64,000 nucleotides of DNA from Octopus sinensis (taxonomy: Eukaryota). Within the stretch, counting starts at the first letter, position 1. Each line of letters opens with the position of its first letter. The notes below the pieces were generated by a model that worked only from the letters and a program-made list of their open reading frames with translations, did not search any database and had not been told where the DNA came from. The stretch spans positions 9,362,001 to 9,426,000 of the forward strand of contig NC_043023.1 of assembly GCF_006345805.1 (NCBI RefSeq), in the 5' to 3' direction. The position numbers were made by a program, and so were the translations under genes. Of the stretch, positions 4,701-37,426 are shown piece after piece.

Positions 4701-5920
4701 TGCATATCTATCTTTCTGTCACCGGATAATTATTCATTCCTTTCATTTCCTTCATTATCTTTTCCTTTACTGTTTTCCTGTTGAATAAGAAATACTAAGC
4801 AGAACATAATGCATTTGTTTTATGCTTCCAAAGAATTTGACTGTTTACCGTCAGAAACACATTGGAATCAGAGGACGAGTTGGAGAAAAGTCTGCATTTA
4901 GCATAATCATGCATCTGACACTTTCAAAAATGTCCTCCTTTTCTAGGTGTTTCTCAGAAACCCCATTACACCTGTTTTGCTTACCCGTTGCAGTAGTCAT
5001 CTACTGAAAGAGCCTCGAATATGTCTAGCATATGTGAGAATAAATCGTGTCAGGATGATGGTGACATCTACTTAGGGCATCCTTTCATCGATTTTCGAAA
5101 TTCCGCAGCTGTTTTGCTCTTTTGCTGAACAGCGTATCTTCACTCGAATGTCGCGGCAAGCAATCCTGGTAGACAATAAAGAACATCCCTGATTATGAGC
5201 TACTGTCTTCCTCAAAGATCTGCGCGAAGCGTTCCTTAAAAGCCGAAAACATCTGTATAAGCTAATGTAGCAGACAACTCAACCGATTATAACCTCAGGA
5301 GGACATCTTCTCCACTTGGCTAATGACACACTGTCTGTGTCTGATTAGTATTTGCGAAAGGAAAAAAAAAAACCATTGCCATCTCTGGCCTTACGTGATA
5401 CACACATACCCGTGTTTCGATGACGAGTTACTACCCAGAAATCAGGGCCTGTGTTTATTACGTAAAACCAGAGACGGGAACCATGATATTAGTTCGCAAA
5501 TACAAGTAAGAAACAAGTACTGTGTCATTTTGGCAGCTAGTCGAGATGTCATCCCGGAGCTATAAACAACAGTAGCATTATCCCCTATGGGACCGACATA
5601 TGTATATATATCCTTCACAATATATATAGGTGTATTTCATTTCATAATTTTCTCAACACCACATTCATTTACATCTCATCTTCATCATAAACGACATCAT
5701 CATTAGCATCATCTTCCTCATCAGTCAACTACGTCACAAGTCATCATTATCAATATCATCATAACCTTCACTTCTCATTATCTTCATCTTCATCTAATTT
5801 TTCCACTCCTACTTCCTTTTCTTCTACATCTACATCCAGTTGATTAGACATATGCGTATTTAAAATTTCGTGAATAATCATTTTTATACCATTTCTTACC
5901 AATTCTCTTCCAACTTACAG

Positions 5921-5992
5921 AAATCTAGCCAATAATAAAATCGCGATTATTGAACATGGATCGTTCGAGGGTCTCACCAATTTAGAGAGGGT
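5921..5992 (+). CDS. LRR exon A1: (L)NLANNKIAIIEHGSFEGLTNLER(V)
   Basis: ttacag|a...gt|gtaagt; 72 nt; phase 2/2. Confidence 0.92.
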
Positions 5993-7143
5993 GTAAGTTT
6001 GATCTTCCTGATATTATTAATCTAATTGTATGTTTCTATATATATTGTCTTCCCTTCTATCTTCGCTCTCTCTTTCATCCTCTCTAACAGACTTTCACTT
6101 TGTCTGTGTGTGTGTGTGTGTGCGCACGCGTGTATGAAAATGATTAAAGATATGAGTGTTTGTGGGTTACATTTGTTATGTGATTTATATAAATTTATGT
6201 GAACAACGTAACAATTAACGATTAAAGACAAAATTCCCCAATACGGGGAAAAGCCATGTAGGACAACGAGGGGAATACAGAGATTCAGATCTAACAATAT
6301 TCGACAATTAGGCGTCACTAATTAGAAGTAGAATACACATCCAGGTGCATTCCTCCTGTATGATAAGTAAATTGAAATATCCTATGGCAGAATTGGGAAA
6401 AATTCAGACATTTTGACATCAAACGATTCATACAGAGACAGTTGCGTTTATTAGATTTCGCAGTATAAAGCCTACAGTAGTTTATATTTTATTAACATTG
6501 ATAAAATCTTCAGTATACAGATGTAGCGGGAGCAACACTTAAGGTTGGTAACATAGATGCAAACACAAAGTTACAATGCTTATATACACAGACATATATC
6601 TATACATAAATAAAAATATGACGAATCTGAATTGTAAACTGAATTTCGTTGCACTCAATAACATTTTTGTAATAGCAGACAGAGAGGCAGATTTACACAT
6701 GCAGACTCTTTCTCTCTCTCTCTCACACGCACACACATACACGCACACACACACACACAGATGCACACACACTCACACACACACAACACACAACCACAAA
6801 ACAATTTGTAAGTCATACACATACTCACATACATATATATATATGTAAATATAAATGTGTAACAAACATATATATATATAGACATATATATATGTATACA
6901 CACACACGCATACACACACACACATATATATATAAGAAGTAAAGATAGACGTTATGCTATTCCATGAAAAACAATTTTACAAACGGACGATCCCACGGCT
7001 TTATCGATCACATACTCACCTGAAATCGATTTTTGTAACTTTTTCAAAACTTATGCACGCCCTGATAGTAGAAAATAGAGATCAAGTCTTTGACTGCAAT
7101 TTTTAGTTTTTCGGTATGTGGCTAAGCAACCTGTTGCCTGCCC

Positions 7144-7192
<49 letters not shown>

Positions 7193-7602
7193 AGCAATAT
7201 TAAATCTGTGAGTGAGACGTAAACAGTAGTAGCACAGAATCGTAAAGTATATTTACCACGTGAACGTATCAGTCCCATAAGGAACGATGCTTCTGGTTTT
7301 TATAGCCTCAGGAGGACATCTTCTCCACTTGGCTAATGACACACTATGTCTGATTAGTATTCGTGAGCGGAAAAAAAAGCATTGCCATCTCTGGCCTTAG
7401 GTGATACACACACACCCAGGTTTCGATAACGAGTTACTACCCAGAAATCAGGGCCTGTGTTTATTACGTAAAACCAGGGATGGGAACCATGATATTAGTT
7501 CGCAAATACAAGACGCAAATACAAGTGGTGTGTTGTTTTGGCAGCTAGTGGAGATGTCATCCTGGGGCTATAAACAACAGTTGCATTATCCACTATGGGA
7601 TC

Positions 7603-7695
<93 letters not shown>

Positions 7696-8099
7696 CCTTC
7701 TCAATATATATATGCATATTTCACTTCATAGTTTTCTTGTAATCTCCGCTTCAAATTCTATTTTTTGTACTTTTTTTATTTCATTGTCGTCATAAGCATC
7801 ATGGCCATGAATGCGATCATCACCGTCCTCAACACCACACTCCTTATCATCTCATCATCATCATCATAAACGACATCATCATTAGCATCATCTTCACCAT
7901 CAGTCAACTTCGTCACAACTCATGATTATCAATATCTTTCTAACCTTCACTCCTCATTATCTTCATCTTCATCTAATTTTGGCACCTCTTCTTCCTTTTC
8001 TTCTACATCTACATCCAGTTGATTAGACATATGCGTATTTAAAATTGTGTGACTAATCATTTTTATACTATTTCTCACCAATTCTCTTCCAACTTACAG

Positions 8100-8171
8100 A
8101 AATCTAGCCAATAATAAAATCGCGATTATTGAATATGGATCGTTCGAGGGTCTCACCAATTTAAAAAAGTT
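8100..8171 (+). CDS. LRR exon A2: NLANNKIAIIEYGSFEGLTNLKK(L)
   Basis: ttacag|a...tt|gtaagt; 72 nt; phase 2/2. Confidence 0.92.
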
Positions 8172-9123
8172 GTAAGTTTGATCTTCTTGATATTATTAAT
8201 CTAATTGTATGTTTCTACATATATTGTCTTCCCTTCTATCTTCGTTCTTTCTTTCATCCTCTCTAACAGACGTTCAATTTTTCTGTGGGTGTATGTGCGT
8301 GTGTTTGTGTGCGTGCGGGTATGAAAATGATTAAGGATATGAATGTTTGTGGTTTAGAATTGTGATGTGATTTATATAAATTTATGTGAACAACGTAACA
8401 ATTAACGATTAACGATTAACGATTAAAGACAAAATTCCCCAATACGGGGAAAAGCAATGTAGGACAACGAGGGGAACCCAGAGATTCAGATCTAACTATA
8501 TTCAACAATTAGGCACCAGTAATAAGAAGTAGAATACACATCCAAGTGAATTCTTCCTGTATGATAAGTAAATAGAAATATCCTATGGCAGAATTCTGGA
8601 AAATTCAGACATTTTGACAACAAACGATAAATAGAGAGAAAGTTGACTTCATTAGATTTCAAATTATAAAGCCTACAATTGTTTCTATTTTATTAACATA
8701 GATAAAATCTTCAGTATACAGATGTAGCGGGCGCAACATTTAAGGTTGGTAACATAGATGCAAACACAAAGTTACAATGCTTATATACACATACATATAT
8801 CTCTATACATAAATAAAAATATGACGAATCTGAATTGTAAACTGAATTTCGTTGCACTCAAAAACATTTTTGTAATTGCAGACAGAGAGGCAGATTTAAA
8901 CATGCAGACTCTTTCTCTCTCTCTCTCACACACACACAAACACGAACACACTCACATACACAACTACAACACAATTTATAATCATACACATGTTCACATA
9001 CATATATATGTAAATATACATGTGTCACAAACAGATATATATATATTATATACACACACGCAAATATATATACACATGTTCACAGACATACACACATGCA
9101 TAAATATATATATATATATAGAC

Positions 9124-9330
9124 GTATGGCCTAGTGGTTAGGGCAGCGGACTTGCGGTCGGAGGATCGCGGTTTCGATTCCCAGACCGGGCGTTGTGTGT
9201 GTTTATTGAGCGAAAAACACCTAAAAGCTCCACGAGGCTCCGGCAGGAGGTGGTGATCCCTGCTGTACTCTTTCACCACTCTAAAGGCGGTGCTCCAGCA
9301 TGGCCGCAGTCAAATGACTGAAACAAGTAC
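9124..9330 (+). mobile_element. tRNA-head SINE; family-1 head joined to a family-2 tail
   Basis: tggcctagtggttagggcagcgg...ggtttcgattccc (A/B boxes), ending aaggcggtgctccagcatggccgcagtcaaatgactgaaacaagta. Confidence 0.8.
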
Positions 9331-9334
9331 AAAA

Positions 9335-9369
<35 letters not shown>

Positions 9370-10429
9370 AAATACCCCGTCAAATGGACGGGGCTATGTT
9401 GTCAAACATTTAAACCAAATTGTCTCAAACAACTTGTCTGACAGTCCCATAGGTCTTCCCTTTGAGAAACACTGATTTAATCTAAAGTTGAGACACCAGC
9501 AGAAGAAGAAATAAAGATAGACGTTTTCTCTATTCCAAGAAAAACGATTTTACAACTGCACGTTCCCACGGCTTTATCTGTCGCATTCTTACCTAGAATC
9601 GACTTTTGCAATTTTTTCAAGATTTATGCACGCCCTGATAGTGTCGGTATCTTCATATCTATTTTGAGCGCAATCTGAGGAAGGATGCCCAAGATATTAG
9701 AAGACACACACACACATAGAAGACAGAACGGATTTTATATAATAGACTAAAAAAAATTGTTTGGGTTTGTCCATTCATAATAAATGAAAATAATAAGTTC
9801 GACTGTAGAGTAACTACTTCAAGGAGTATATCCATGCAGGGACACCGGATTATGTCCAAGACGGATGCTTCACCTCAGACTGTAAAGGGAGGTAACTAAA
9901 TGAGTTTGGCAAATTTCTTTGTCACTCAACAGTAGTTGAAAAAGAAAATAGAAAATTGATGGACTGTGTATGAAATATGCATGCTTGGTGTTAAGGGAAG
10001 CAACTCCTATCAGCGCCATATTGTCGATTGTCCAATCAAAGAAAAACGATTTCCCACGGCTTTATCGATCTGGAATCGATTCTTGTAATTTTTTCAAGAC
10101 TTATACACGCCTGATACCGTCGGTATCTACATATCAAAATTGAGTGCATGTGGATGGAGGATGTCGGAGATCTGAGAAGACACACAGACACATACACACG
10201 CACCCACACACGCATACATACTTTCATATACGTGTGTTCGTCTTTTAGTTTTTTTATGAGCCAGTTGAACAAAACAGTGTGGTTTTTCAGTTTGCTGGAA
10301 ATAACAGCCAGACCTCTCTCATGTCATGGTCTTAATAGTTTTAAGGAAAGGGAAAAAATAGAATTAATGGTTTTGATTTTGTTCGGATCTATGAAATTTA
10401 TTATTATTTTAAAGCTTTCGTCCATTACT

Positions 10430-11249
10430 TGATTAAAGTAATTGGGAAACCATTTTCTTGCCTTGGGATTCACGGTCAAATGTCAAGGTGGAATTTCGTG
10501 AAAAATTACACAGATGTGTAGAATGATCCGGTGGTGTTGCTGGGTTTTGTATTTTTTCATAGCTCCCATGGTTACCGAGATAATCTACAATAATAATACT
10601 CTTGTGTTTATGAATGAGAAAGGAAGAGGTGATTGATGAATAAGGAAAGAAGGGGCAATCTTGGTAGTGAGATGATGAAAACTCCACGCTGAAAAAAACA
10701 AAAAACAGAGTTTTAACTCTGTGTGAATATATGTGTGTATGTAAAACCAGAGTATGTGAATGTGTGTGCGTGTGAGTGTGTGTGATTGAATGTGTGTGTG
10801 CATGTGATTTTGTGTGTGATTTTGTGCACGCGCAATTGAAGTGGGATGGTTAACATTCAATGCTGAAAAGAAAAATCAAACAGCGTTTCAACTCTGTGTT
10901 TGGTATTCACTTACCAGCTCTTGTATTTAGTCACGGCCAGCTTTATGTAGCATTAAGTCGCAAAAGAAGGAAGGAATTTAGTTGCCGATAGATTTTTCTT
11001 AAGTTTGGTTGTAAAAAATTATTAAACTAAAAACTTGGTTTTGTACATTATCTACTATAATAATATTCTTGTGTTTTTCTCCGTCAGAACACATGAATGA
11101 AAAAGGAAGGAGTGATAGATGAATAAAGAAAGAAAGACATGGCATATTTCGTAGTGGGATGATGGAAGCTGCACAGTGACAAAGATAATTCAAACAGCGT
11201 CTCAACTCTGTGTGAGTTTATGTGTGTCTATATAGAAGGAGGTACGTGA

Positions 11250-11281
<32 letters not shown>

Positions 11282-11660
11282 AATGGAAGTGAGATGGTGA
11301 ACATTCAACGCTGAAAAGAAAAATCAAACAGCGCCTCAACTCTGTGTGAGTTTATGTGTGTCTATATAGAAGGAGGTATGTGAATGTGTGTGTGTGTGTG
11401 TGTGTGTGTGCAATGGAAGTGAGATGGTGAACATTCAACGCTGAAAAGAAAAATCAAACAGCGTTTCAACTCTGTGTATTTGGTATTTACTTGCCAGCTC
11501 CCTTATTTAGTCACGGCCAGCTTTATGTGGCCTTACGTAGAACATGAAGGAAGGAAAACTTGAAAATTTTTTTGACGGAAACAAGCAGTCAAAGGATTTT
11601 AGTTGCGGATAGATTTTTTACAAAAAATTTGGTAATAAAAGAATTATTAAACCAAAATCT
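10430..11660 (+). repeat. Exon-less partial copies of the intron upstream of B, including ~130-bp tandem repeats at ~11190-11470
   Basis: caaacagcg.ttcaactctgtgtg...aatgtgtgtg...caatggaagtgagatggtgaacattcaacgctgaaaag recurs and matches 3350-3490. Confidence 0.75.
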
Positions 11661-11719
11661 TGGTTTTTATAACTTATATATATATATATTTTGACGGCAC
11701 GGGTGCCGGTCTAGCATAC

Positions 11720-11796
<77 letters not shown>

Positions 11797-12379
11797 CACG
11801 CACACACATGTATATATATATATAATAAGGGTAGAAATTGATAGTAATCAACTGAAACCAGTGGCTTAACATATTTAAAAAAAATTAGAAGATTAAAAAT
11901 TATATTACATACAAAATTAAGGGTGCGATTCCTGTGTCTGTGTCTAGTACTGGAAATTATGTTTTGTAAACGACAGACTAAGCTGATGAGCCTGCAGATA
12001 TTTACATGCGTAAATATTAACGAGCGAAACCATTGGTACATAGGTAATTGTTTTTTATTTCGTATGTTTTCATTTGTCATGCTTATTTTTACATTCTGGT
12101 TATTTGCTGAATTTTTTTTCATGAGAACACACGCTTTTGGTTGGGTAATTTGACGTCAATATCAAGCATATTAGGAGTCCACTTCGGTGGTCATTCCTCT
12201 ATATTTTGTAAGTAATAAAAATACATACACATATATATACACACACACTTATATATATACATACACATATATATACACGTATATATATACATGTATATAT
12301 ACACATATATATGTATATATATATATATATATCATATATTTATCATTCATTTTCTACTTTTTGTGTTGTAGATAAAGGT

Positions 12380-12427
<48 letters not shown>

Positions 12428-12527
12428 TATTATTATTATTTTGTATTAGTTTATGTCTACCACTGTTTGAGTTGCATAATAGTGGTTTTATTTCTAATTC
12501 ATATTTAATATATATATATATACGTAC

Positions 12528-12608
<81 letters not shown>

Positions 12609-13186
12609 CATATATATATATTTAAACATATAATATAGTGAGAGAGAGAAATAAGAGAGATAGATAGATAGATAAATATATTGTATATGTGTGTATTGTA
12701 TATGTGTGATAACCATGGAAACACCGATTGCCAAAATCCTCTTAATGAGAAGATGGTGATATGAGAAAAATAAAAATAATGATGAAAATAGTGGTGTTTG
12801 TGATGTGTGTAGTAGTTGAAGTTACGTGGATGGTAGATGATACGCAATAAAGCACATGAGAGCGAGAACAAATATTCCGCTGACCTTTCAATATTATATA
12901 CGAAGCCACAAAAGAGAAGAAACGAAAAAAAGTGGGTGAAAGCCTATAGGGGTGGATGTGCCCGAAAGAGTAAAACCAGAAGTCTAGAATTTAGAATTTA
13001 TAAGATTTGTTGATCAATTTGTCAATGTTATGAATTTCACCGTTCATTCACTTTTGTCTTTTTCATGTTGTAGCTATTTTTCTCTTCTATTTCTTTCTCT
13101 TCAATTTCTGCATCTTATTGTTTAGACATAATATTTACATTTTTATGACTAAATTCTTCTATTTTATTTCTTATGAATCCCTACAG

Positions 13187-13258
13187 ACGTCTATCCGACA
13201 ATAAAATCTCGAAAATCGAAAGAGGATTATTCGAAAATCTAACCAGAATTTGGACTTT
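13187..13258 (+). CDS. LRR exon B2: RLSDNKISKIERGLFENLTRIWT(L)
   Basis: ctacag|a...tt|gtaagc; 72 nt; paralogue of B1 with homologous flanking introns. Confidence 0.92.
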
Positions 13259-14564
13259 GTAAGCTGGATCAGTCTCGTTGATACATTTTTGTTGACTATA
13301 TTTCTAAATATTTAATGTATTCTCATCTTTCTTTCTCCTCCTTCTTTTTAACATTCTCTAAATCCCATTCTCTTGCTATGTGTGTCTGTGAATGTGTGAA
13401 GGTGCTTGAGAATATGAACTCCTGCGGTTGACATCATTGTTTCATATTATGCATGTGATTGAGGCGGCGTGCTGGTAGATGTATAATCACGCTGGACAAA
13501 ATCTTGAGCTGCATTTCGTCCGCTTTTGATTGCTGAGTTCAAATTCAACCGAGGTCGACTTCACCATTTATCTATTTGTAATCGATTATTCGACATAATC
13601 AGTTAGCACCCTCCGCCAGCATTCCAGGACGTGTGCCTATGATAGGAAGGATATTATATAAGTGTTGGTAGGTTCATATCTATCTTTCTGTCACCGGATA
13701 ATTATTCATTCCTTTCATTTCCTTCATTATCTTTTCCCTTACTGTTTTCCTGTTGAATAAGAAATACTAAGCAGAACATAATGCATTTGTTTTATGCTTC
13801 CAAAGAATTTGACTGTTTACCGTCAGAAACACATTGGAATCAGAGGACGAGTTGGAGAAAAGTCTGCATTTAGCATAATCATGCATCTGACAATTTTAAA
13901 AATGTCCTCCTTTTCTAGGTGTTTCTCAGAAACCCCATTACACCTGTTTTGCTTACCTGTTGCAGTAGTCATCTACAGAAAGAGCCTCGAATATGTCTAG
14001 CATATGTGAGAATAAATCGTGTCAGGATAATGGTGACATCTACTTAGGGCATCCCTTCATCGATTTTCGAAATTCCGCAGCTGTTTTGCTCTTTTGCTGA
14101 ACAGCGTATCTTCACTCGAATGTCGCGGCAAGCCATCCTGGTAGACAGTAAAGAACATCCCTGACTATGAGCTACTGTGTTCCACAAAGAGCTGCGCGAA
14201 GTTTTCCTTAAAAGCCGAAAACATCTGTATAAGCTAATGTAGCAGACAACTCAACCGATTATAGCCCAAGGAGGACATGTTCTTCACTTGGCTAATGACA
14301 CACTGTCTGTGTCTGATTAGTGTTTGCGAAAGGAAACAAAAACCATTGCCATCTCTAGCCTTACGTGATACACACATACCCGTGTTTCGATGACGAGTTA
14401 CTACCCAGAAATCAGGGCCTGTGTTTATTACGTAAAACCAGAGACGGGAACCATGATATTAGTTCGCGCATACAAGTAAGACACAAGTAGTGTGTCATTT
14501 CGGCAGCTAGTGGAGATATCATCCTGGAGCTATAAACAACAGTAGCATTATCCCCTATGGGAAC

Positions 14565-14618
<54 letters not shown>

Positions 14619-14628
14619 GTTCCCATAG

Positions 14629-14679
<51 letters not shown>

Positions 14680-15082
14680 TTCACAATATATATATATATG
14701 TATATTTCACTTCATAATTTTCTTGTAGTCTCCGCTTCGAATTCTATTTTTTGTACTTCTTTTATTTCATTGTCGTCAAAAGCATCATGGCCATGAACAA
14801 GACCATCACCGTCCTCAACACCACACTCCTTATTATCTCATTATTATCATCATAAACGGCATCATCATTAGCATCATCTTTTCCATCAGTCAACTGCGTC
14901 ACAAGTCATGATTATCAATATCATCAAATCCTTCACTCATTATCTTCATCTTCATCTAATTTTTGCACTCCTACTTCCTTTTCTTCTACATCTACATCCA
15001 GTTGATTAGACACATGCGTATTTAAAATTTTGTGACTAATCATTTTTATACCATTTCTCACCAATTCTCTTTCAACTTACAG

Positions 15083-15154
15083 AGATCTAGCGAATAATGA
15101 AATAGCGATTATTGAACATGGATCGTTCGAAAGTCTTACCAATTTAAAGGAGTT
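15083..15154 (+). CDS. LRR exon A3: DLANNEIAIIEHGSFESLTNLKE(L)
   Basis: ttacag|a...tt|gtaagt; 72 nt; phase 2/2. Confidence 0.92.
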
Positions 15155-15787
15155 GTAAGTTTGATTTTCCTGATATTATTAATCTAATTGTATGTTTCTA
15201 CATATATTGTCTTCCCTTCTATCTTCGCTCTCTCTTTCATCCTCTCTAATAGACGCCCACTTTGTCTGTGTGTGTGTGTGTGTGTGTGTGCGTGCGAGCG
15301 GGTATGAAAATGATTAAGGATATGAGGGTTTGTGGTTTACGTTTGTGATGTGATTTATATACATTTATGTGAACAACGTAACAATTAACAATTAAAGACA
15401 CAATGCCACAATATGGGGAAAAGCCATGTAGGACGACCAAGGGGATCCGGAGATTGAGATCTAACAATATTCGACAATTAGGCGCCACTAACTAGAAGAA
15501 GAATAGACATCGAGATGAATTCTTCATGTATGATAAGTAAATAGAAATATCCTATGGCAGAATTCGGAAAAAAACACAGACATTCTGACAACAAACGATA
15601 AATATAAAGACAGTTGCGTTTATTAGATTTGGCGGTATAAAGCCTACAATTGTTTCTATTATATTAACATTGATAAAACCTTCAGTATACAGATGTAGCG
15701 GGATCAACACGTAATGTTGTTAGCATAGATGCAAACAGAAAGATACAATGCTTATATACACATATATGTACATATACATGTGTCACA

Positions 15788-15826
<39 letters not shown>

Positions 15827-15832
15827 TATATA

Positions 15833-15938
<106 letters not shown>

Positions 15939-16112
15939 TTATAAAATGAGATAGGGGTTGAAAATTCAACCCACCATGGGATAACATATATCCAATATAC
16001 TGCTAGAGAGCTACCCAACAAGACTAATACATAAATGTTAAAAATTGCCATGCAATTAATTCATCTACTGTATTATGTTGGCAAGGGTAAAATTATTACC
16101 GTAAATTAATAA

Positions 16113-16726
16113 TACAAAATTAGAAACTGGAGAAACATACTTAAATCAATCAAACATCAACCATCAGATAATACCCAATCAATACTTTATTACACCATTA
16201 CATAACAGCAAAGACATTATACAAAATATATTGTAAATATAATTAGACAAGGAAATAGAAATATAAAATACAATTACATCATATCTGACAGCTGTTCCGG
16301 CCGTGAGGACAAGTATGCTTCATTTAACCTATAAGCCATATAAGGCAGGTGTAAATGAGACATTAACAAGGATGTCCTACGGCCTCTTCAGAAAATTTAA
16401 TTTAATATAAGTGTGAAAAAATTTTACATATAAATATAAAAATATAAAATATAAAAATGTGTGCATAGACACTCATAATACTACACATATATATATACAC
16501 ATTAATACAATAATACAAAATAAACAGAATATATCAATATACATTCACAAACACAGTTATTTTACATATCGGACTCCTAGTTCCATAACTAACATCAAGG
16601 AAAATATATGCACACTCACATTTAAATTTAAATCAGACATATATACATAAAAAAATAATAAAAAACCACACAGTTCAGTTCATAAAATTATAACCCTACA
16701 AAAAGTCAATAAAAATTAATATTAAT

Positions 16727-16773
<47 letters not shown>

Positions 16774-17378
16774 CCATGACGGTACCAAGTACATCAAGCG
16801 GACATCTACATATCAATCTGTCAGATATGATGTAATTGTATTTTATATTTATATTTCCTTGTCTAATTATATTTACAACTAGCAGTATCGCCCGGCGTTG
16901 CTCAGGTTTGTAAGGGAAATGACTATAAAGCATTTTTAGAGAGTTATAGCCAAAAAATAGCAAAAAAATGGAAAAAAAATTATGGTAAGTTTTTTTTTGA
17001 GATTTAAAAAGGTGGAGTTGCGCCCCCTAGACAGTTTATGGTTTGTGTTTCTGATTCTCGACCCCATGTCGAATTTATCGATTCTTTTTAGAACTGGGGG
17101 AACTTTTCAAAATTTTCGCTGCGTTAGTTTTGAATTATGACATTGGGCTATGTGTGTGTCAAGTTTCATCAGAATCGGTTGAAAGCCGTGGTCAGGGTGA
17201 GGGTATAAGCAAACAGACACACAGAAACACGCACAGACAAACTGCCGTTATATAGAGAGAGATATATTTTGTATAATGTCTTTGCTGTTATGTAATGGTG
17301 TAATAAAGTATTGATTGGGTATTATCTGATGGTTGATATTTGATTGATTTAAGTATGTTTCTCCATTTTCTAATTTTG

Positions 17379-17380
<2 letters not shown>
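16113..17380. mobile_element. Foldback element with ~180-bp inverted arms (16113-16291 / 16818-17380); right arm split by a Helitron
   Basis: The arms are reverse complements once 16879-17262 is removed. Confidence 0.85.
16879..17262 (-). mobile_element. Non-autonomous Helitron (384 bp)
   Basis: Minus strand starts TC and ends with a hairpin (CCTGAGCAACGCCGGG) then CTAG; inserted between A and T with no TSD. Confidence 0.85.
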
Positions 17381-17450
<70 letters not shown>

Positions 17451-17785
17451 CATACAACGCTCCCCATTCCATGGACAGTGCTGAGGTGCCAAACATTTAA
17501 ACCAAAGTGTTTCAAAAAATTTGTCCCTTTGAGAAACACTGATTTAACCCAAATTTCAGACACTAGCTAAAGAAGAAATAAAGATAGACTTTTTTCTATT
17601 CCAAGAAAAACGATTTTTGCAAATGCACGTTCCCACGGCTTTATGGATCGCATACACACCTGAAATCGATTTTTGTAAGTTTTTCAATACTCATGCACAC
17701 CCTGATAGTAGAAAACAGAGATAAACAGTTTTTGACTGCTATTTTTAATTTTTTGGTATGTGGCTAAGCAACCTGTTGCCTGTCC

Positions 17786-17914
<129 letters not shown>

Positions 17915-17930
17915 ATATATATATATATAT

Positions 17931-18223
17931 CACCGTGATCACCGTGTCCGGCCAGGCTATCAGATTTTGCTACATATCGCTGGTCACAATGCGCTTTGCA
18001 TTGTTTTAGCCTTCAAGCTACTCCACCCCGCTGGCTAAGCGAGCAGGCCAACAGAAGAAAGAGTGAGAGAAAGTTGTGGCGAAGTAGTACAGCAGGGATG
18101 GTTACCACCCTCTGTCGGAGCCTCGTGGAGCTTTGGGTGTCTTCGCTCAATAAACACTGACAACACCCGGTCTGGGAATCGAAACCGCGATCCTACAACC
18201 GCGAGTTCGCTGCCCTAACCACT
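17931..18223 (-). mobile_element. tRNA-head SINE (family-1 head, alternative tail)
   Basis: Reverse complement begins agtggttagggcagcgaactcgcggttgtaggatcgcggtttcgattccc. Confidence 0.82.
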
Positions 18224-19078
18224 ATATATATGTATATAAATAAGCAATATTAAATCTGTGAGTGAGACGTAAACAGTAGTATCACGGAATCGTAAAGTAT
18301 ATTTACCACGTAAACGTATCAGTCCCATAGGGAACGATGCTTCTGGTTTTTATAGCCCCAGGAGGACATCTTCTCCACTTGGCTAATGACACGCTATCGG
18401 TGTCTGATTAGTATTTGCGAAAGGAAAGAAAACATTGCCATCTCTAGCCTTACGTGATACACACATACCCGTGTTTCGATGACGAGTTACTACCCAGAAA
18501 TCAGGGCCTGTGTATATTACGTAACACCAGAGGCGGGAACCATGATATTAGTTCGCGCATACAAGTAAGACACAAGTGGTGTGTCGTTTTGGCAGCTAGT
18601 GGAGATGTCATCCCGGGGCTATAAACAACAGTAGCATTATCCCCTATGGGACCGACATATATATATATATATATATCCTTCACAATATATATATGTATAT
18701 TTCACTTTATATTTTTCTTGTAATCTCCGCTTCAAATACTATTTTGTACTTCTTATATTTCATTGTCGTCATAAGCATCATGGCCATGAATGCGACCATT
18801 AACGTGCTTAACACCACACTCCTTATCATCTCATCATCATCATCATAAACGATATCATCATTAGCATCATCTTCACCATCAGTCAACTTCGTCACAACAC
18901 ATGATTATCAATATCTTTCTAACCTTCACTCCTCATTATCTTCATCTTCATCTAATTTTTGCACTTCTACTTCCTTTTCTTCTACATCTACATCCAGTTG
19001 ATTAGGCATATGCGTATTTAAAATTTTGTGACTAATCATTTTTATACCATTTCTCACCAATTCTCTTCCAACTTACAG

Positions 19079-19150
19079 AAATCTAACCAATAATAGAATC
19101 GCGATTATTGAACATGGATCGTTCGAGGGTCTCACCAATTTAAAAAAGTT
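19079..19150 (+). CDS. LRR exon A4: NLTNNRIAIIEHGSFEGLTNLKK(L)
   Basis: ttacag|a...tt|gtaagt; 72 nt; phase 2/2. Confidence 0.92.
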
Positions 19151-19878
19151 GTAAGTTTGATTTTCCTGATATTATTAATCTAATTGTATGTTTCTACATA
19201 TATTGTCTTCCCTTCTATCTTCGCTCTCTCTTTCATCTTCTCTATCAGACTTTCACTTTGTGTGTGTGTGTGTGTGTGTGTGTGTTTGTGTGCGTGCGGG
19301 TATGAACATGATTAAGGATATGAATGTTTGTGGTTTAGAATTGTGATGTGATTTATATAAATTAATGTGCACAACGTAACACGTAACAATTAACGATTAA
19401 AGACAAAATTCCCCAATACGGGGGAAAGCCATGTAGGACAACGAGGGGAATCCAGAGATTCAGATCTAACTATATTCCACGATTAGGCACCAGTAATAAG
19501 AAGTAGAATACACACCCAAGTGAATTCCTCCTGTATGATAAATAAATAGAAATATCCTATGGCAGAATTGGGAAAAATTCAGACATTTTGACAAGAAACG
19601 ATAAATATAGAGACAGTTGCGTTTATTTGATTTCCCATTATATAGCCTACAATTGTTTCTAATATATTAACATAGATAAAACCTTCAGTATACAGATGTA
19701 GCGGGAGCAATACTTAAGGTTGGTAACATAGATGCAAACACAAAGATACAATGCTTATATACACAGACATATATCTATACATAAATAAAAATATGACGAA
19801 TCTGAATTGTAAACTGAATTTCGTTGCACTCAATAACATTTTTGTAATTGCAGACAGAGCGGCAGATTTACAGATGCA

Positions 19879-19923
<45 letters not shown>

Positions 19924-20391
19924 CACACACACACACACACACAGCGCGCGCGCGCGCGTTCACACACACACACACACATATATCTATAGTTCACAATATA
20001 TATATGTATATTTCACTTCATAATTTTCTTGTAATCACCGCTTTCAATTCTTTTTTTTGTACCTCTTTAATTTCATTTTCGTCATAAGCATCATGGCCAT
20101 GAACGCGACCATCACCGTCCTCAACACCACACTCCTTATTATCTCATCATCATCATCATAAACGACATCATCATTAGCATCATCTTTTCCATCAGTCAAC
20201 TTCGTCACAACTCATGATTATCAATATCTTTCTAACCTTCACTCCTCATTATCTTCATCTTCATCTAATTTTGGCACCTCTTCTTCCTTTTCTTCTACAT
20301 CTACATCCAGTTGATTAGACATATGCGTATTTAAAATTTCGTGACTAATCATTTTTATACCATTTCTCACCAATTCTCTTCCAACTTACAG

Positions 20392-20463
20392 AAATCTAAC
20401 CAATAATATAATCGCGAGTATTGAACATGGATCGTTCGAAAGTCTTACCAATTTAAAGATATT
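20392..20463 (+). CDS. LRR exon A5: NLTNNIIASIEHGSFESLTNLKI(L)
   Basis: ttacag|a...tt|gtaagt; 72 nt; phase 2/2. Confidence 0.92.
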
Positions 20464-21177
20464 GTAAGTTTGATCTTCCTGATATTATTAATCTAATTGT
20501 ATGTTTCTACATATATTGTCTTCCCTTCTATCTTCGCTCTCTCTTTCATCCTCTCTATCAGACTTTCACTTTGTCTGTGTGTGTGTGTGCGCGCGTGTAT
20601 GAAAATGATTAAAGATATGAGTGTTTGTGAGTTACGTTTGTGATGTGATTTATATAAATTAATGTGAACAATGTAACATGTAACAATTAACAATTGAAGA
20701 CAAAATTCTCCAATACGGGGAAAAGCAATGTAGGACAACGAGGGGAATCCAGAGATTCAGATCTAACTATATTCAACAATTAGGCACCAGTAATAAGAAG
20801 TAGAATACACACCCAAGTGAATTCCTCCTGTATGATAAGTAAATAGAAATATCCTATGGCAGAATTCGGAAAAATTCAGACATGTTTACAACAAACGATA
20901 AATATAGAGAAAGTTGTCTTTATTAGATTTCAAATAAAAAAGCCTACAATTGTTTCTATTTTATTAACAAAGATAAAATCTTCAGTATACAGATGTAGCG
21001 GGAGCAACACTTAAGGTTGGTAACATAGATGCAAACACAAAGTTACAATGCTTATATACACATTCATATATCTATACATAAATAAAAATATGATGAATCC
21101 GAATTGTAAACTGAATTTCGTTGCACTCAATAACATTTTTGTAATTGCAGACAGAGAGGCAGATTTACAGTTGCAGA

Positions 21178-21228
<51 letters not shown>

Positions 21229-21649
21229 AACACACACACACATATACTTCACAATATATATATGTATATTTCACTTCATAATTTTGTTGTAATAACCGCT
21301 TCAAATTCTATTTTTTGTACTTCTTTTAATTCATTCTCGTCATAAGTATCATGGCCATGAACGCGACCATCACCGTCCTCAACACCACACTCCTTATCAT
21401 CTCATTATCATCATCATAAACGACATCATCATTAGCATCATCTTCACCATCAGTCAACTTCGTCACAACTCATGATTATCAATATCATCATAACCTTCAC
21501 TTATCATTATCTTCATCTTCATCTAATTTTTCCACTCCTACTTCCTTTTCTTCTACATCTACATCCAGTTGATTAGACACATGCGTATTTAAAATTTCGT
21601 GACTAATCATTTTTATACCATTTCTCACCAATTCTCTTCCAACTTACAG

Positions 21650-21721
21650 AAATCTAACCAATAATATAATCGCGATTATTGAACATGAATCGTTCGAAGG
21701 TCTCACCAATTTAAAAAAGTT
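21650..21721 (+). CDS. LRR exon A6: NLTNNIIAIIEHESFEGLTNLKK(L)
   Basis: ttacag|a...tt|gtaagt; 72 nt; phase 2/2. Confidence 0.92.
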
Positions 21722-22696
21722 GTAAGTTTTTAATCCTCCTGTATGATAAGTAAATAGAAATATCCTATGGCAGAATTCGGAAAAATTCAGACATTTTGAC
21801 AACAATCGATACATATAGAGATAGTTGCGTTTATTAGATTTCACATTATAAAGCCTACAATTGTTTCTATTTTATTAACATAGATAAAATCTTCAGTATA
21901 CAGATGTAGCGGGAGCAACACATAAGGTTGGTAACATAGATGCAAGCACAAAGTTACAATGCTTATATACACATACATATATCTATACATAAATAAAAAT
22001 ATGATGAATCTGAATTGTAAACTGAATTTCGTTGCACTCAATAACATTTTTGTAATTGCAGACAGAGAGGCAGATTTACAGATGCAGATTATCCACACAC
22101 ACACACATACACACACACACACGCACACACACACACACACACGCACACACTCACACAAACACGAACACACATAAACAACCACAAACAATTTATAGTCATA
22201 CACATGCTCACATACATATATACGTAAATATACATGTGTCACAAACATATATATATATATATTATATACACACGCAAATATATATGCACATGTTCACAGA
22301 CATATACATAAACATAAATATATATATATAGACAATAATATATTATTATTTTTACAATTTGTATTCTTATCTCATATGTATTGAATCATAAGATATATAT
22401 GTATGCTATTAAGGTTCTCATTATGTTTAATGGATATATAATCCAACATTTTAATATCCGAAAGTTGATTAAGAAACAATGTTTGTGTCTCCATTTTCTT
22501 ATTTGTGTTATATATATATATATATATATATATCTATTTAAATAGGTGAATGATTTATCCTATGTTTATCGTCAGCATGGAAAATTCGTTTAACCGAAAC
22601 CTGGGTAGCAAATTCACGTAAGAAACACGGTTGAAGCGACCTGTCGAAGGGTAGAAACTCCGGGTTCATGTGGAGAAATTTGTGTGTTGTATATGA

Positions 22697-27015: not shown

Positions 27016-27495
27016 AATAATGATAATAATAATAATGATGATGATAATAATAATAATAACGATGATAATAATAATAATAATAATAATGATAATAATAATA
27101 ATAATGATAATAATGATAATAATAATAATAATAATAATGATGATGATGATAATAATAATAATAATAATGATAATAATAATAATAATAATAATGATGATGA
27201 TGATAATAATAATAATATAATAATGATAATTAATGATAATATAATAATAATAATAATAATAATGATGATGATTATGATAATGATAATAATAATTAATAAT
27301 GATGATAATAATAATATTAATAATAATATAATAATAATAATAATAATAATAATATAATAATGATGATGATGATGATGATCATGATGATGATGATCACGAT
27401 GATCATGATAATAATAATAATAATAATATAATAATATAATAATAATAATGATGATATGATAATGATAATACTAATAATAATAACAACAATAATAA
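26468..27495. repeat. ~1-kb compound (AAC)/(AAT)/(GAT) microsatellite ending ~28 nt before the LRR-cap exon
   Basis: Direct. Confidence 0.97.
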
Positions 27496-27523: not shown

Positions 27524-27687
27524 TGACCTCAGAAACAATACAGACATGATGTGTGGATGTCACTGCCAGCTATGTCAAATATATAAAGAGTACATACAAC
27601 AGAACTGTGAGAATTCTGGGCAAGTGTCACACAAATTTAGGCTCTAAGATAAATTAATATCTATAAGGAAATATTCACAATGTAAAG
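27524..27687 (+). CDS. LRR C-terminal cap exon, apparently disrupted: DLRNNTDMMCGCH...(shifted frame YVKYIKSTYNRTVRILGKCHTNLGS)...DKLISIRKYSQCK(G)
   Basis: ttacag|t...aaag|gttagt; 164 nt links phase 2 to phase 1 as required. The entry frame has TAA near 27645, and the cap-like middle lies in a shifted frame. Confidence 0.7.
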
Positions 27688-30355: not shown

Positions 30356-30447
30356 GAAAGACGTTACTTCGAAAGAATTTGCAGTGTCAAACATGTTCAG
30401 GGATGATTTGCGATCATTCGCAAATGAGAAGTTGTCCCGGACTACTG
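30356..30447 (+). CDS. Ly6/uPAR (three-finger)-like domain exon 1: (G)KTLLRKNLQCQTCSGMICDHSQMRSCPGLL
   Basis: ctgtag|ga...ctg|gtaaat; 92 nt; phase 1/0; CxxC start typical of LU domains. The ORF track gives a different frame here. Confidence 0.85.
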
Positions 30448-30562
30448 GTAAAATGAAATGTTACTTTCCTCCTCTCTATCAAAATATGTCCATAACCGTC
30501 AATAGCAACTCAGTATGACCAGGTAGCTTGAACCATGCTTTTGCTAATTGTTTTCGGTGACT

Positions 30563-30800
30563 AAGGCGGCGAGCTGGCAGACACGTTAGCGCGCCGGGCG
30601 AAATGCTTAGTGGTATTTCGTCTGTCGCTACGTTCTGAGTTGAAATTCCGCCGAGGTCGACTTAGCCTTTTATCCTTTCGGGGTCGATAAATTAAGTACC
30701 AGTTATGCACTGGGGTCAATGTAATCGACTTAATCCGTCTGTCTGTCCTTGTTTGTCATCTCTGTGTTTAGCCCCTTGTGGGTAGTAAAGAAATAAGTAT
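30563..30800 (+). mobile_element. Family-3 SINE ending ~28 nt before LU exon 2
   Basis: aaggcggcgagctggcag...ccgccgaggtcgac...gccccttgtgggtagtaaagaaataagtat. Confidence 0.88.
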
Positions 30801-30828
30801 TATATGGCTGTTATATTCATTGTTACAG

Positions 30829-31012
30829 CCTCTCTGCCAATATGGGCTATCAGTGAATGGCAGTACATTGAAGTTTCAAAGATCCTGCAGCACATACGAC
30901 AACTGCCGTGAAGCTATCGGAAACAATTCCCTTACATGCAAAAATTGGTCCAATGGCACTGCTTGTGTTGATTGCTGCAGCGACAACTTATGCAATAAGA
31001 ATGATTTCCCTG
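30829..31012 (+). CDS. LU-like domain exon 2: PLCQYGLSVNGSTLKFQRSCSTYDNCREAIGNNSLTCKNWSNGTACVDCCSDNLCNKNDFP(G)
   Basis: ttacag|cct...cctg|gtaagt; 184 nt; phase 0/1; carries the CCxxxxCN hallmark. Confidence 0.9.
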
Positions 31013-31063
31013 GTAAGTGTTGTCAATTCTTTGATTTTATCGCATCTGATTTATTTATAGAGT

Positions 31064-31260
31064 GGTTGTATACTGTCAACTTAACGTGACAGTCCTGTAA
31101 GGGAATTGCACCACCGCTGTTTAGCCCTAGGAAGCATCGATGCTTCCTGTCGGCCTTAAATGTGTCAAGGCCGACAGGAAGCGTCGATGCTTCCTAGGGC
31201 TAAACAGCGGTGGTGTAAATCCCTTACAGGACTGTCACGTTAATTTGACAGTATACAACC
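31064..31260. mobile_element. Near-perfect palindromic element (MITE-like), ~94-bp arms and a 9-nt loop
   Basis: ggttgtatactgtcaa...cctgtcggcctt / aaggccgacagg...ttgacagtatacaacc; about 4 mismatches. Confidence 0.88.
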
Positions 31261-32127
31261 ACCACTCTATCGCTCCACCACCGTACATATCTCTATGAGA
31301 TATTTAGAAATTTAATATTTCTGATTTATTTATAGATGGATGTTTAATATGAAGATTGGATAATAGTTAATATATGATAAAATGAGTTACTGTGTACACT
31401 CACAAACACAAACGCACACACACATATACTTACATATATACTATATAATATATAATATATATGCGCATGTGTGTGAGTGTTGTGTGTATATCACACATAT
31501 ATATGTACATATATATATATATATATATATATACATAGATATATACACACATATATACAAATCTCTCTCTCTATAAATATATATATATACACACACAAAT
31601 ACGAACACACACGCACACACACATTTATATATCAAGTATGCATGCATTGCACCTTCATTGGGTTTACGACCGTTATCCATGTTGTCATGGGTTAGACGGA
31701 TATACTATACAACAATTGTTTTACAATCGAATGCCATTCCTATCACTAATGCTTACGCATTTTCTGGTGACGAATTTCTTATTTCACATTTCTTCCAATG
31801 CATGGACCGATTGAATGATTTGTTGACAGGAAAAGCGCTTGCGATTTTCAGAGTACGTTTTTTTAACAAAGAGTACGTTTTTAACACACACATATATGGA
31901 CATATACAGGGTTTCTTTCAGTTTAGATATCTGAAATTTACAAATCAGGGTTTGATCGGCCGGAGTAGCAAACACTTGCCTAAGGTGCCACGCAGTAGGA
32001 CTGAATTCTTAAGTATGTGTCGAACAATTTAACCATCGGGCTATCCCTGCACCTGTATACGCATCTTTACATATGTGTGTGCGTGTGTGTATGTATATGT
32101 ATATATATATTTGAATATATGCATGTG

Positions 32128-35284: not shown

Positions 35285-35391
35285 GTTGGACGCATTCCTT
35301 TGAACTTCATCTGATTTATACCGTGGACACATATTCGACTTTTAAGAAGTTAACTGAAAAGGAAAACACCACCGAAAATATATCTAGAGCC
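35285..35391 (+). CDS. SEA-like domain exon 1: (G)WTHSFELHLIYTVDTYSTFKKLTEKENTTENISRA
   Basis: gaatag|gt...gcc|gtgagt; 107 nt; open; phase 1/0 fits neighbours. Confidence 0.75.
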
Positions 35392-35445
35392 GTGAGTTAG
35401 CATGTATTTTCTTTCGATCCCTCTCTTCGTTTCTCTCTATCTTTC

Positions 35446-35492
<47 letters not shown>

Positions 35493-36413
35493 ACACACAG
35501 ACGTGTCATATAAAACGAATGTCAATCATCAACTAAATAAGGAAGAAAACACACGTAGTAGACAACATTATTCATTTGGTTGAAAGATAACCGCGGCTTT
35601 GATTAAGATAACTGTATTTAGTTTAAACAGTATACCAATATATGTTTTGATGTCAATATGGTATCAAAGGCCTCAATAGCAGTTCACAGTCATGTTAGCA
35701 CATATATTATAAATGCGTAAAGACCAGATTCTTATATATTTCTGGACAGTTATATAGACTTGACGCATTTTTACTACAAAGTAAATTTAATGTTTAAAAA
35801 AATCCGTAATTTCTCCCAAGACGTAAGGTTTTTCTTTCAACAGAAGCCCAGAAATTCACTTATTTTCTTCTTGATTCTCTTATCTCTGTATATTCCAAAT
35901 ATACATTATATATAAAATAAAACTGAAGGACAACTACAATTTGCCCGAAAATTATCAACTAATACTAATTATATAATTAAAAACCAAGTGCAGCACAATG
36001 TGCTCAAACTGTTATTGCTTATTGACGTATCCAATTAATAATATAAATTCCTATGAAATCCTATTTTCTAATCCCTTTCTATGCAATCTTCACTCAAATA
36101 GTTTAATCATTTATCCGATTCTGTATCCGAATACATACTGTTTCACCAACTACACAGACTCATTTGCATCAAATTTTAGAACCTCAGTCCATAATATCCA
36201 ATAAGGTTTGCTGAGGCACACTCACTTACCAACAACAATGCCTTTAAGCAGTTTTCACCTCTAATGATAACATATCAACCCGAAATTGATGTGAACCTCA
36301 CCGAAGGTTCACAATTTCCGTGAATTTTATATACAAGTATATATGTATATATAAGATTTGTACTTACATGACCGCAGCTCTGAGCTGAAACTTTAAAAAT
36401 ATATATATATATA

Positions 36414-36981
<568 letters not shown>

Positions 36982-37000
36982 ACACACACACACACACACG

Positions 37001-37100
<100 letters not shown>

Positions 37101-37376
37101 GTCGAAATATGTTACGAAAAGAAAATATAAAATACACGTGGAAATGTAAGTGTAAAATATGAAAAATCAACGGTGTTGTTCATACGATGAATAGCTTCGC
37201 GTAAATCATTGGTTCGTTTTGTTCTCTCACTTTATTATCATCTCATAATCATCCCATAATAATGACTTTTATGACTCGTTTTACTACCTCAGTTAATCTA
37301 AATGTATATATTTGTCGTTAGCCTTTTTCTATTTGCAATATGCAATATGCATTTTCGTTGATTTTTCATATTTTAC

Positions 37377-37426
<50 letters not shown>

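Follow-up and report, generated by a model that had tools for sequence, protein, structure and literature searches.

A probable six-disulfide Lynx2/LYPD6-type three-finger domain within the ectodomain of an octopus adhesion GPCR

Introduction

In three-finger domains of the Ly6/uPAR type (LU domains), proteins are bound by the loops and the concave sheet, and the contexts in which these domains have been described are secreted proteins, GPI-anchored proteins with a single domain, GPI-anchored proteins with multiple domains, and the ectodomains of TGF-beta receptors (PMC6600238). An LU domain in the sense of that review has 60-90 residues and ten plesiotypic cysteines in an order that allows 1-5, 2-3, 4-6, 7-8, and 9-10 bonds, and a further disulfide in loop III is termed 'apotypic' (PMC6600238). 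Since its known occurrences were limited to single domains, tandem copies, and TGF-beta receptors, the fold was judged 'probably not a bona fide mobile module' (PMC6600238).

The described protein closest to the module that we report here is human LYPD1/Lynx2 (PDB 6ZSS). Lynx2 has six disulfides, of which four are invariant while Cys6-Cys15 closes loop I and Cys66-Cys75 closes loop III, and its helix spans residues 51 to 61 (PMC7582953). Lynx2 stands alone as a GPI-anchored protein of about 85 residues, and its gene has a signal-peptide exon and two LU exons, whereas the octopus module lies within a protein of about 1000 residues. LYPD6 and LYPD6B (PDB 6GBI, 6IB6, 6ZSO) also have the six disulfides that are predicted for the octopus module, with the extra bonds in loops I and III. 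The receptors for TGF-beta, activin, and BMP resemble the octopus receptor in that a three-finger domain lies in the extracellular part of a signalling receptor, but they are single-pass Ser/Thr kinases in which the LU domain is the whole ectodomain, with 10 cysteines in type I, whereas the octopus LU domain, with the 12-cysteine pattern of Lynx2, is one of several modules in a mosaic 7TM receptor.

Among adhesion GPCRs, vertebrate ADGRA2/ADGRA3 (GPR124/125) and ADGRG6 (GPR126) share with the octopus proteins an order of LRRs with an LRR C-terminal cap (LRRCT), a small globular domain, a hormone-receptor-motif (HRM) domain, GAIN, and 7TM. In ADGRA2/3, an Ig domain takes the place of the octopus LU domain and of a domain that we call X; ADGRG6 has CUB-PTX-SEA. 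LU domains are not known from any vertebrate adhesion GPCR (PMC11595613). In the starfish Asterias rubens and Acanthaster planci, Lynx2/LYPD6-like LU domains (LyAr2/LyAp2 and XP_033635539.1) have been mentioned in passing as NCBI-annotated in the N-terminal part of adhesion GPCRs, the human homologue of which is without an LU domain (PMC9410279, PMC11595613). The octopus-specific expansion of adhesion GPCRs is reported to be enriched in axial nerve cord, suckers, and skin, and only LRRs have been noticed in the N-termini of its members (PMC6408891). We consider it likely that the two octopus exons described below encode a genuine six-disulfide Lynx2/LYPD6-type LU domain internal to an adhesion GPCR, inherited with a cephalopod-expanded family and held under purifying selection, with a function that we infer.

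Results

Two exons in symmetric phase encode the module

The window, by which we mean the whole 64-kb stretch of DNA that was analysed, is AT-rich and contains microsatellites and transposon debris. Spliced together, the two LU exons (Table 1) encode KTLLRKNLQCQTCSGMICDHSQMRSCPGLL followed by PLCQYGLSVNGSTLKFQRSCSTYDNCREAIGNNSLTCKNWSNGTACVDCCSDNLCNKNDFP, a module of 91 residues with 12 cysteines and CCSDNLCN at its C-terminal end, the reading frame being entered with two bases of a split codon. Exon A corresponds to finger I and contains Cys1-Cys4 (module residues C10, C13, C18, and C26), and exon B corresponds to fingers II and III, the helix, and the C-terminal CCSDNLCN (Cys5-Cys12). The LRRCT exon upstream ends ...AAA G/gt, and its last G together with the GA of exon A makes a Gly codon; exon B ends ...CCT G/gt, and the next exon, which begins at 35285, opens with GT TGG to give Gly-Trp. 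Since codons are split in this way at both ends (G+GA; G+GT TGG), both outer introns are phase 1, and in Argonauta as in the window the two exons are entered in phase 1, separated by a phase-0 intron, and left in phase 1. The original prediction had given two exons within 30356-31012, the 12 cysteines, the CCxxxxCN motif, and a phase-1 intron at either end of the module, and our reading of the sequence, of its translation, of the LRRCT donor, and of the acceptor at 35285 agrees with it on each point.

Two exons per domain with flanking phase-1 introns are typical of LU genes, in which the canonical site of the internal intron is the tip of loop 2 (PMC6600238). The octopus module has the two exons and the flanking phase-1 introns, but its internal intron, placed between Cys4 and Cys5, precedes the predicted tip at N40-G41 by about 10 residues, whereas that of Lynx2 is at the loop 2 tip. 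A dispersed SINE-like repeat sits inside the internal intron of the octopus module.

Table 1. Exons and intron of the receptor gene in the window, in window coordinates (a slash marks an exon-intron boundary in the splice-site sequences and the cleavage site in the GPS motif)
Feature	Position	Strand	Details
Six single-repeat LRR exons (whole span)	5916..21722	+	tblastn with P0002 against the window; limits approximate
Individual LRR exons	5916-5993, 8095-8172, 15078-15155, 19074-19151, 20387-20464, 21645-21722	+	approximate tblastn limits
LRRCT exon	27524..27687	+	phase-1 donor, feeds LU exon A
LU exon A	30356-30447	+	ctgtag/GAAAG ... CTACTG/gtaaaa (AG/GT); enters in phase 1, leaves in phase 0
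Phase-0 intron within LU domain	30448..30828	+	between module residues L30 and P31, i.e. Cys4 and Cys5
LU exon B	30829-31012	+	ttacag/CCTCTC ... CCCTG/gtaagt (AG/GT); leaves in phase 1
Domain X, three exons	35285-35391, 37831-37883, 39473-39630	+	about 105 residues, between LU and HRM; phase 1-1 set
HRM, two exons	44933-45044, 45786-45907	+	phase 1 at entry and exit
GAIN exons	47505-47724, 48103-48274, 51084-51230, 55784-55918	+	
GPS exon	56548-56688	+	carries CSCNHL/TSFAILM; Pfam GPS E 8.3e-15 on window protein
First three 7TM exons	58210-58331, 61045-61168, 63583-63727	+	Pfam 7tm_2 E 5.8e-16 on window protein

The module lies in the open reading frame of an adhesion GPCR

From LU exon A to TM3, tblastn together with manual reading of the splice sites gives 15 consecutive exons with AG/GT boundaries, 13 of them after the LU exons, which encode 678 residues without a stop, and within this path separate phase 1-1 exon sets encode the LU domain, domain X, and HRM. 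The protein encoded by the window has a GPS in a GAIN domain directly before a secretin-type 7TM, the arrangement that marks an adhesion (class B2) GPCR, and the earlier placement of the module in the ectodomain of such a receptor is thus borne out by the 13 further in-frame exons that lead to GPS and 7tm_2. The 7TM part is incomplete because the gene runs beyond the end of the window. With the upstream exons included, the domain order of the receptor is LRR – LRRCT – LU – X – HRM – GAIN/GPS – 7TM. Pfam finds HRM below threshold in paralogue P0008 (E 0.0011), and it is part of the precomputed annotation for P0004; the Pfam model of the ADGRA2/3-type GAIN domain (PF26588) matches many family members. 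Domain X gave no Pfam match and no meaningful PDB sequence match, and it is a conjecture of ours that it is SEA-like. The GAIN domain contains the canonical HL/T cleavage motif and the tethered-agonist sequence TSFAILM.

Across exons and introns alike, the window runs collinear with O. vulgaris OX597842.1 at 21.56 Mb (92-98% identity), and from this collinearity and identity we conclude that the window is the orthologous locus of a close relative of O. vulgaris. In the O. vulgaris 'ADGRG6-like' model P0001, all 91 residues of the module are identical (exon A matches P0001 residues 41-70 at 100% protein identity) and are joined to HRM, GAIN/GPS, and 7TM. A word-indexed homologue search with the 91-aa module alone returned nothing, homologues being found only with the receptor part added to the query. 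The family returned by the module together with the downstream exons is Octopus-specific and goes under the NCBI names 'adhesion GPCR G6-like', 'G2-like', and 'A3'; the module is present in 32 of 120 listed family proteins, nearly all with 12 cysteines and many also with 7tm_2. An intron-less Logan contig of 4.2 kb (run SRR21372857) encodes signal peptide–LRR–LU–X–HRM–GAIN–7TM in one ORF, and the module is therefore part of a receptor mRNA in at least one species.

These junctions and models also bear on whether the two exons could instead be an independent gene for a secreted or GPI-anchored Ly6-type protein, lying inside an intron of the receptor gene. Reading through the donor of exon B yields 25 more residues and a stop (GKCCQFFDFIASDLFIEWLYTVNLT followed by the stop codon), and short database models such as P0121 end in the manner of such a read-through. 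However, the exon that precedes the module is the LRRCT, with a donor of fitting phase, and no signal-peptide exon lies ahead; the read-through tail, non-hydrophobic and with Asp/Glu, is no GPI signal; the junctions on either side keep the phase of the receptor exons; and the orthologous and paralogous models as well as the intron-less contig put the module inside the receptor ORF. A nested gene is scarcely credible in the light of these observations, and we retain the reading in which the exons belong to the receptor.

The exon order also sets the product apart from two classes of protein. A single-domain GPI-anchored or secreted Ly6 protein does not agree with an LRRCT exon that precedes the LU exons and an ORF that continues after them, and a receptor of the TGF-beta family would have a single TM and a Ser/Thr kinase where the window has LU followed by X, HRM, GAIN/GPS, and 7TM.

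Profile and structure searches converge on the three-finger fold

Pfam gives no match to the LU module of the window even at E<=10, and none of the clan models (UPAR_LY6, UPAR_LY6_2, Toxin_TOLIP, Activin_recp, CD59) reaches its gathering score among 18 family members, nor does the precomputed Pfam annotation of the listed family proteins contain a family of the Ly6/uPAR clan. The subthreshold matches among the 18 members are almost all of Ly6/uPAR/toxin type (Activin_recp in 5, Toxin_TOLIP in 4, UPAR_LY6_2 in 3, and CD59 in 1), the best being Activin_recp in one member at E 6.9e-4. Failure to reach a gathering score is a matter of detection and not of structure.

A profile of the octopus modules searched against all PDB sequences gave five matches at E<10, all of which are three-finger proteins; ACVR1 is a weak PDB match. 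We then used profile A2, in which the octopus modules are broadened with O. bimaculoides, Argonauta, a Logan transcript, and a scallop protein. With A2, hmmsearch against the PDB sequences found human LYPD1/Lynx2 at E 1.6e-4, and all 11 matches at E<10 are again three-finger proteins; LYPD6/LYPD6B match weakly (E 0.07-2.3), more poorly than Lynx2. In the HMMER comparison with the uPAR_Ly6/toxin clan that had been proposed as a check, no Pfam gathering score was reached. When A2 was aligned by hhalign with a LYPD1 profile made of 16 vertebrate LYPD1 sequences and the human query, the probability was 94.5% (E 8e-8) over 79 columns with 12 of 12 cysteines aligned, compared with 0.2% for a reversed-profile control.

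Two AlphaFold2 models, both of moderate confidence (pLDDT 63 and 66, pTM 0.52-0.57), have three-finger topology, with hairpins at about residues 9-25 and 31-52, followed by residues 53-79 as the third finger; strands are found at 31-40, 43-52, and 75-79, and a helix begins at residue 53. In the second run, which used a broader alignment, the five models were more consistent with one another and the top confidence was not higher. Foldseek ranked Lynx2 (6ZSS) first for both models, with TM scores of 0.62/0.65 and 0.51/0.53 and E-values of 0.02-0.04 that are not significant alone. Three-finger folds account for the best 50 matches of the first search and for nearly all of the second; below Lynx2, both lists are filled by uPAR, PSCA, LYPD6B, CD59, the ectodomains of BMP/TGF-beta receptors, and three-finger proteins of snakes.

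The lack of a Pfam match for the window sequence and the merely moderate AlphaFold2 confidence would both be expected of an unrelated cysteine-rich module, for example an elaborated extension of the LRRCT, that mimics the cysteine spacing by chance. Against this, all of the sequence and structure searches return three-finger proteins almost exclusively, the spacing from Cys5 to Cys12 is that of Lynx2, and the hhalign probability of 94.5% falls to 0.2% when the profile is reversed. We therefore regard an unrelated module as highly improbable. Every independent line agrees on the three-finger fold, although no single number is overwhelming, and a reading other than LU is very unlikely; the original assignment of the exons to this fold, and the AlphaFold and Foldseek check proposed for it, have thus come out in its favour.

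The twelve cysteines follow the six-disulfide pattern of Lynx2

The cysteine positions, the C-terminal CCxxxxCN with its Asn, the three-finger fold (in two models of moderate confidence), and the sequence homology to accepted members together place the module in the LU superfamily. As far as positions are concerned, each of the ten plesiotypic cysteines and both of the loop III cysteines share an alignment column with their counterpart in Lynx2, and all are conserved in the family. C13/C18 and C67/C76 of the module align with Cys6/Cys15 and Cys66/Cys75 of Lynx2, which are the pairs characteristic of the six-disulfide subclass. Lynx2 is like the octopus module also in its helix, which follows Cys6 and leads into finger III, and in its C-terminal CCxxxxCN, whereas the identity between the two is only about 20-23% and loop I of the octopus module is shorter by 4 residues.

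By analogy with Lynx2, the disulfides are predicted to be C10-C33, C13-C18 (loop I), C26-C50, C56-C79, C67-C76 (loop III), and C80-C85, i.e., a pairing by cysteine number of 1-5, 2-3, 4-6, 7-10, 8-9, and 11-12. Homology to Lynx2 also leads us to expect two beta-hairpin fingers, a helix that runs into the third finger, and an invariant C-terminal Asn. In 41 different homologous modules, at identities as low as 24-38%, the 12 cysteines and the C-terminal Asn are all kept; C79, C80, C85, and N86 are invariant in alignment A1, and at least 90% of A2 has N86. From the conservation in these 41 modules and the loss of the LYPD1 profile match in the reversed control, we conclude that the module is not a product of chance. 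Because the cysteines match those of Lynx2 one to one, the 12-cysteine pattern is that of a known six-disulfide subclass and not a novelty. The original prediction had suggested an extra disulfide, which by homology appears real although Lynx2, LYPD6, and LYPD6B share the arrangement, and a second binding site, for which we found no support.

The LU module is more constrained than its surroundings

Between the window and the O. vulgaris orthologue, the LU exons have 0 nonsynonymous and 2 synonymous differences (dN/dS 0), whereas all other exons to TM3 have 45 nonsynonymous and 22 synonymous differences (dN/dS 0.51), of which domain X and HRM contribute 15 and 4 (dN/dS about 1). The difference between the LU module and the rest of the gene has a Fisher p of 0.003, with small counts. 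On these counts, small as they are, no other part of the ectodomain is as constrained as the LU module. Mean column entropy across 41 paralogous modules is 1.5-1.6 bits in the fingers versus 1.1-1.2 bits in the core (head and helix).

Upstream of the LU exons the assembly is in a different state. Relative to the intact O. vulgaris orthologue, the LRRCT exon of the window has three 1-nt homopolymer deletions, near 27562, 27580, and 27646; the O. vulgaris LRRCT (L002) reads SDLRNNADMMCGCQLPAMSNYIKSTYNRTVRILGKCHTNLGSKDKLIPIMEYSQCKG in one frame, whereas the window needs three frame changes for the same peptide and as assembled has an in-frame stop in the reading path. With these deletions and the stop, the window copy as assembled cannot link the LU domain to LRRs or a signal peptide. 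The window yielded neither a signal-peptide exon nor an LRRNT exon, and the six LRR exons sit within tandemly repeated DNA.

The damage to the LRRCT raises the alternative that the window copy is a decaying or N-terminally crippled paralogue, in which the fold would hold but the module would be a relic outside a working receptor. Consistent with this, no protein among the matches listed is identical to the window product, dN/dS is about 1 in domain X and HRM, and the O. vulgaris annotation likewise separates the LRR part from the receptor part. On the other hand, the 678 codons in 15 exons from the LU domain to TM3 have no stop and their splice sites are all AG/GT, the LU module itself has no nonsynonymous change, and the three deletions are all homopolymer contractions by an AT-rich repeat whose sum restores the frame, a pattern typical of assembly error. 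We favour an assembly error for the LRRCT, because the deletions sum to a restored frame, adjoin a long AT-rich simple repeat, and stand beside 678 codons that are otherwise clean, and we think a crippled copy unlikely. The reading of the module as part of a working receptor is the one carried forward below.

The same counts speak to what the module does there, since it could be a mere rigid spacer that separates the stalk from the LRR arc, or an extension of the cap, and lack any binding surface. The LU domain always comes directly after the LRRCT cap, and the finger residues of the 41 modules are only modestly more variable than the core, as would suit such a role. A spacer is less easily reconciled with the protein binding of LU domains in general by their loops and concave sheet (PMC6600238), with the presence of two LU modules in some paralogues, or with an amino-acid sequence that is fully conserved between orthologues next to domains that change freely. 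An LU module that stays unchanged while its neighbours vary points beyond a spacer role, which we hold to be somewhat unlikely, and a binding function remains the one we prefer.

The module was present in the octopod ancestor

HMMER over 1.84 billion cluster representatives returned 27 proteins at E<=1e-3, which are from Octopus species, Argonauta hians, and Logan and ENA sequences, together with one scallop protein and one evident false positive (P0138). Three of the matches (P0121, P0133, P0136) are short and resemble fragments of gene models, and the full-length matches that were inspected carry LRR and/or receptor parts. The search for the closest free-standing LU gene, which the original prediction had recommended, gave none closer than the general superfamily in these 1.84 billion representatives. 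None of the non-octopus adhesion GPCRs among the matches listed (echinoderm, fish, bird) has the LU module.

The scallop protein (P0137) carries the module at E 2e-5 with 12 cysteines aligned. In Argonauta hians the module is encoded by two exons in phases 1, 0, and 1, with the inner intron at exactly the same residue position as in the window. We conclude that the module was present in the octopod ancestor and was probably there earlier in molluscs. The same exon structure in Argonauta and the module in the scallop mean that any capture was ancient and not an event at this locus; the suggestion that the module was acquired by exon shuffling accordingly keeps the support of its symmetric phases and of paralogues with LU-LU tandems, but not as something that happened here.

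Discussion

The arrangement of the receptor suggests how the module might work. By analogy with other LU domains, it would be a rigid, glycosylated protein-binding unit, and the LRR arc with the LU head would engage an extracellular partner. Binding or pull at the distal end would then pass through X/HRM to the GAIN domain, which would expose the tethered agonist (TSFAILM...) and thereby activate the 7TM.

Free Lynx/LYPD proteins bind Cys-loop nicotinic receptors, and octopus suckers use diverged nicotinic-receptor-like chemotactile receptors. By analogy, the LU domain might be a tethered 'prototoxin' that docks on Cys-loop receptors in cis or in trans and couples ionotropic chemotactile sensing to G-protein signalling, which we put forward as a very doubtful but specific idea. 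In a weaker form of this idea, LU domains may have been captured independently by adhesion GPCRs in molluscs and in echinoderms. If so, independent capture would speak against the view in PMC6600238 and make the LU domain a truly mobile one.

The starfish receptors are the precedent for an LU domain in an adhesion GPCR, and the position between LRRs and stalk is an unusual place for a three-finger fold. They belong to another phylum, rest on automatic annotation that describes an 'N-terminal LU', and are compared with the octopus receptor by description; none of the echinoderm adhesion GPCRs among the matches listed has the module. With the octopus family, the ectodomain repertoire of adhesion GPCRs would gain an LU domain in a second phylum, and a stretch that was blank to Pfam is now annotated in dozens of octopus receptors and LRR proteins. 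A small, expressible, and strongly conserved domain also offers a handle with which to de-orphanise a lineage-specific family of receptors of the octopus arm.

The view of LU mobility is also touched by the octopus module being an internal phase 1-1 module of a mosaic protein that is tandem-duplicated in some paralogues. Two tandem LU modules are found in P0051, P0054, and P0121. Single-module proteins have Asn before the LU module and Gly after it, and the residue at the LU-LU junction is Asp, as is expected from the phase-1 join of G with AY. The sequence of these junctions supports the view that the LU exon set can be duplicated in frame.

Uneven evolution of the receptor ectodomain

We compared the coding exons of the window with L002, the orthologous genomic sequence of O. 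vulgaris. The three-finger (LU) module has no nonsynonymous changes between the two; domain X (window 35285-39630), which lies between LU and HRM, and HRM (44933-45907) together have 15 nonsynonymous and 4 synonymous changes, with a dN/dS of about 1. Judged from these coding differences, the rate of evolution is very uneven across the ectodomain.

The LU module is also found as two tandem copies in three octopus paralogues outside the window (P0051, P0054, and P0121), and in each of these the residue at the LU–LU junction is Asp. This is the residue predicted when a phase-1 donor (G) is joined to the acceptor side of LU exon A (AY), and such a fit implies, at the level of sequence, that the two-exon LU set would have been duplicated in frame in these paralogues.

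Repeats around the ectodomain exons

The LRR exons are set within tandemly repeated genomic units (window ~3600–22000), of which near-identical recurring ORF sets are listed in the table. Because such units surround the LRR exons, unequal crossing-over may alter the LRR number of the receptor gene. The intron within LU carries a SINE-like dispersed repeat whose 23-nt core occurs in seven copies in the window, on both strands, where none is expected by chance. Starting 50 nt downstream of the LU exon B donor is a near-perfect inverted repeat, similar in appearance to a MITE or a hairpin element. Transposon remnants were also recognised by eye in translations of the introns: one ORF resembles a reverse transcriptase, two are fragments of retroelement ORFs, and another resembles a Tc1/mariner-type transposase.

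Positions of repeats, deletions, and transposon remnants
Feature	Window position	Strand	Detail
Recurring ORF set, near-identical (example)	3598-4424; 12423-13201
Recurring ORF set, near-identical (example)	5293-5562; 7401-7739; 14237-14458; 18448-18621
Transposon remnant, intronic	22791-24220	+	by eye, translations only
AT-rich repeat	27400-27490		beside the LRRCT deletions
1-nt homopolymer deletions	27562; 27580; 27646		LRRCT exon 27524-27687; reference, intact O. vulgaris orthologue
SINE-like repeat	30500-30800		core 30680-30702; inside LU intron
Other SINE-like cores	34963; 48882; 49066; 49230; 57706; 57890
Inverted repeat	31062-31262		arms 96 nt, 96% complementary; loop 9 nt
Transposon remnant, intronic	43544-44536	+	by eye, translations only
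Transposon remnant, intronic (Tc1/mariner-type transposase-like ORF)	52433-53240	-	by eye, translations only

LRRCT single-base deletions and possible split gene models

Relative to the O. vulgaris orthologue, the LRRCT exon in the window lacks three single bases in homopolymers, so that it has to be read along the path f0→f2→f1→f0 and contains a stop. These deletions are either an assembly error beside the AT-rich repeat or a sign that the 5′ part of the gene was disabled very recently. In the O. vulgaris annotation, the LRR part (a 190-aa model, L002 1-1232) is separate from and upstream of P0001, the LU–7TM model, even though the LRRCT exon is in frame in O. vulgaris; the first residue of P0001 is a Met encoded within that exon. 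Many family entries that appear as "LRR-only" or "GPCR-only" may be split models of one gene. P0001 also has eight extra HRM residues, RTSPYMTS (275-282), that are missing from the window model (45786 region) and could reflect alternative acceptor use or a micro-exon; the family protein P0003 starts at the Met within this insert.
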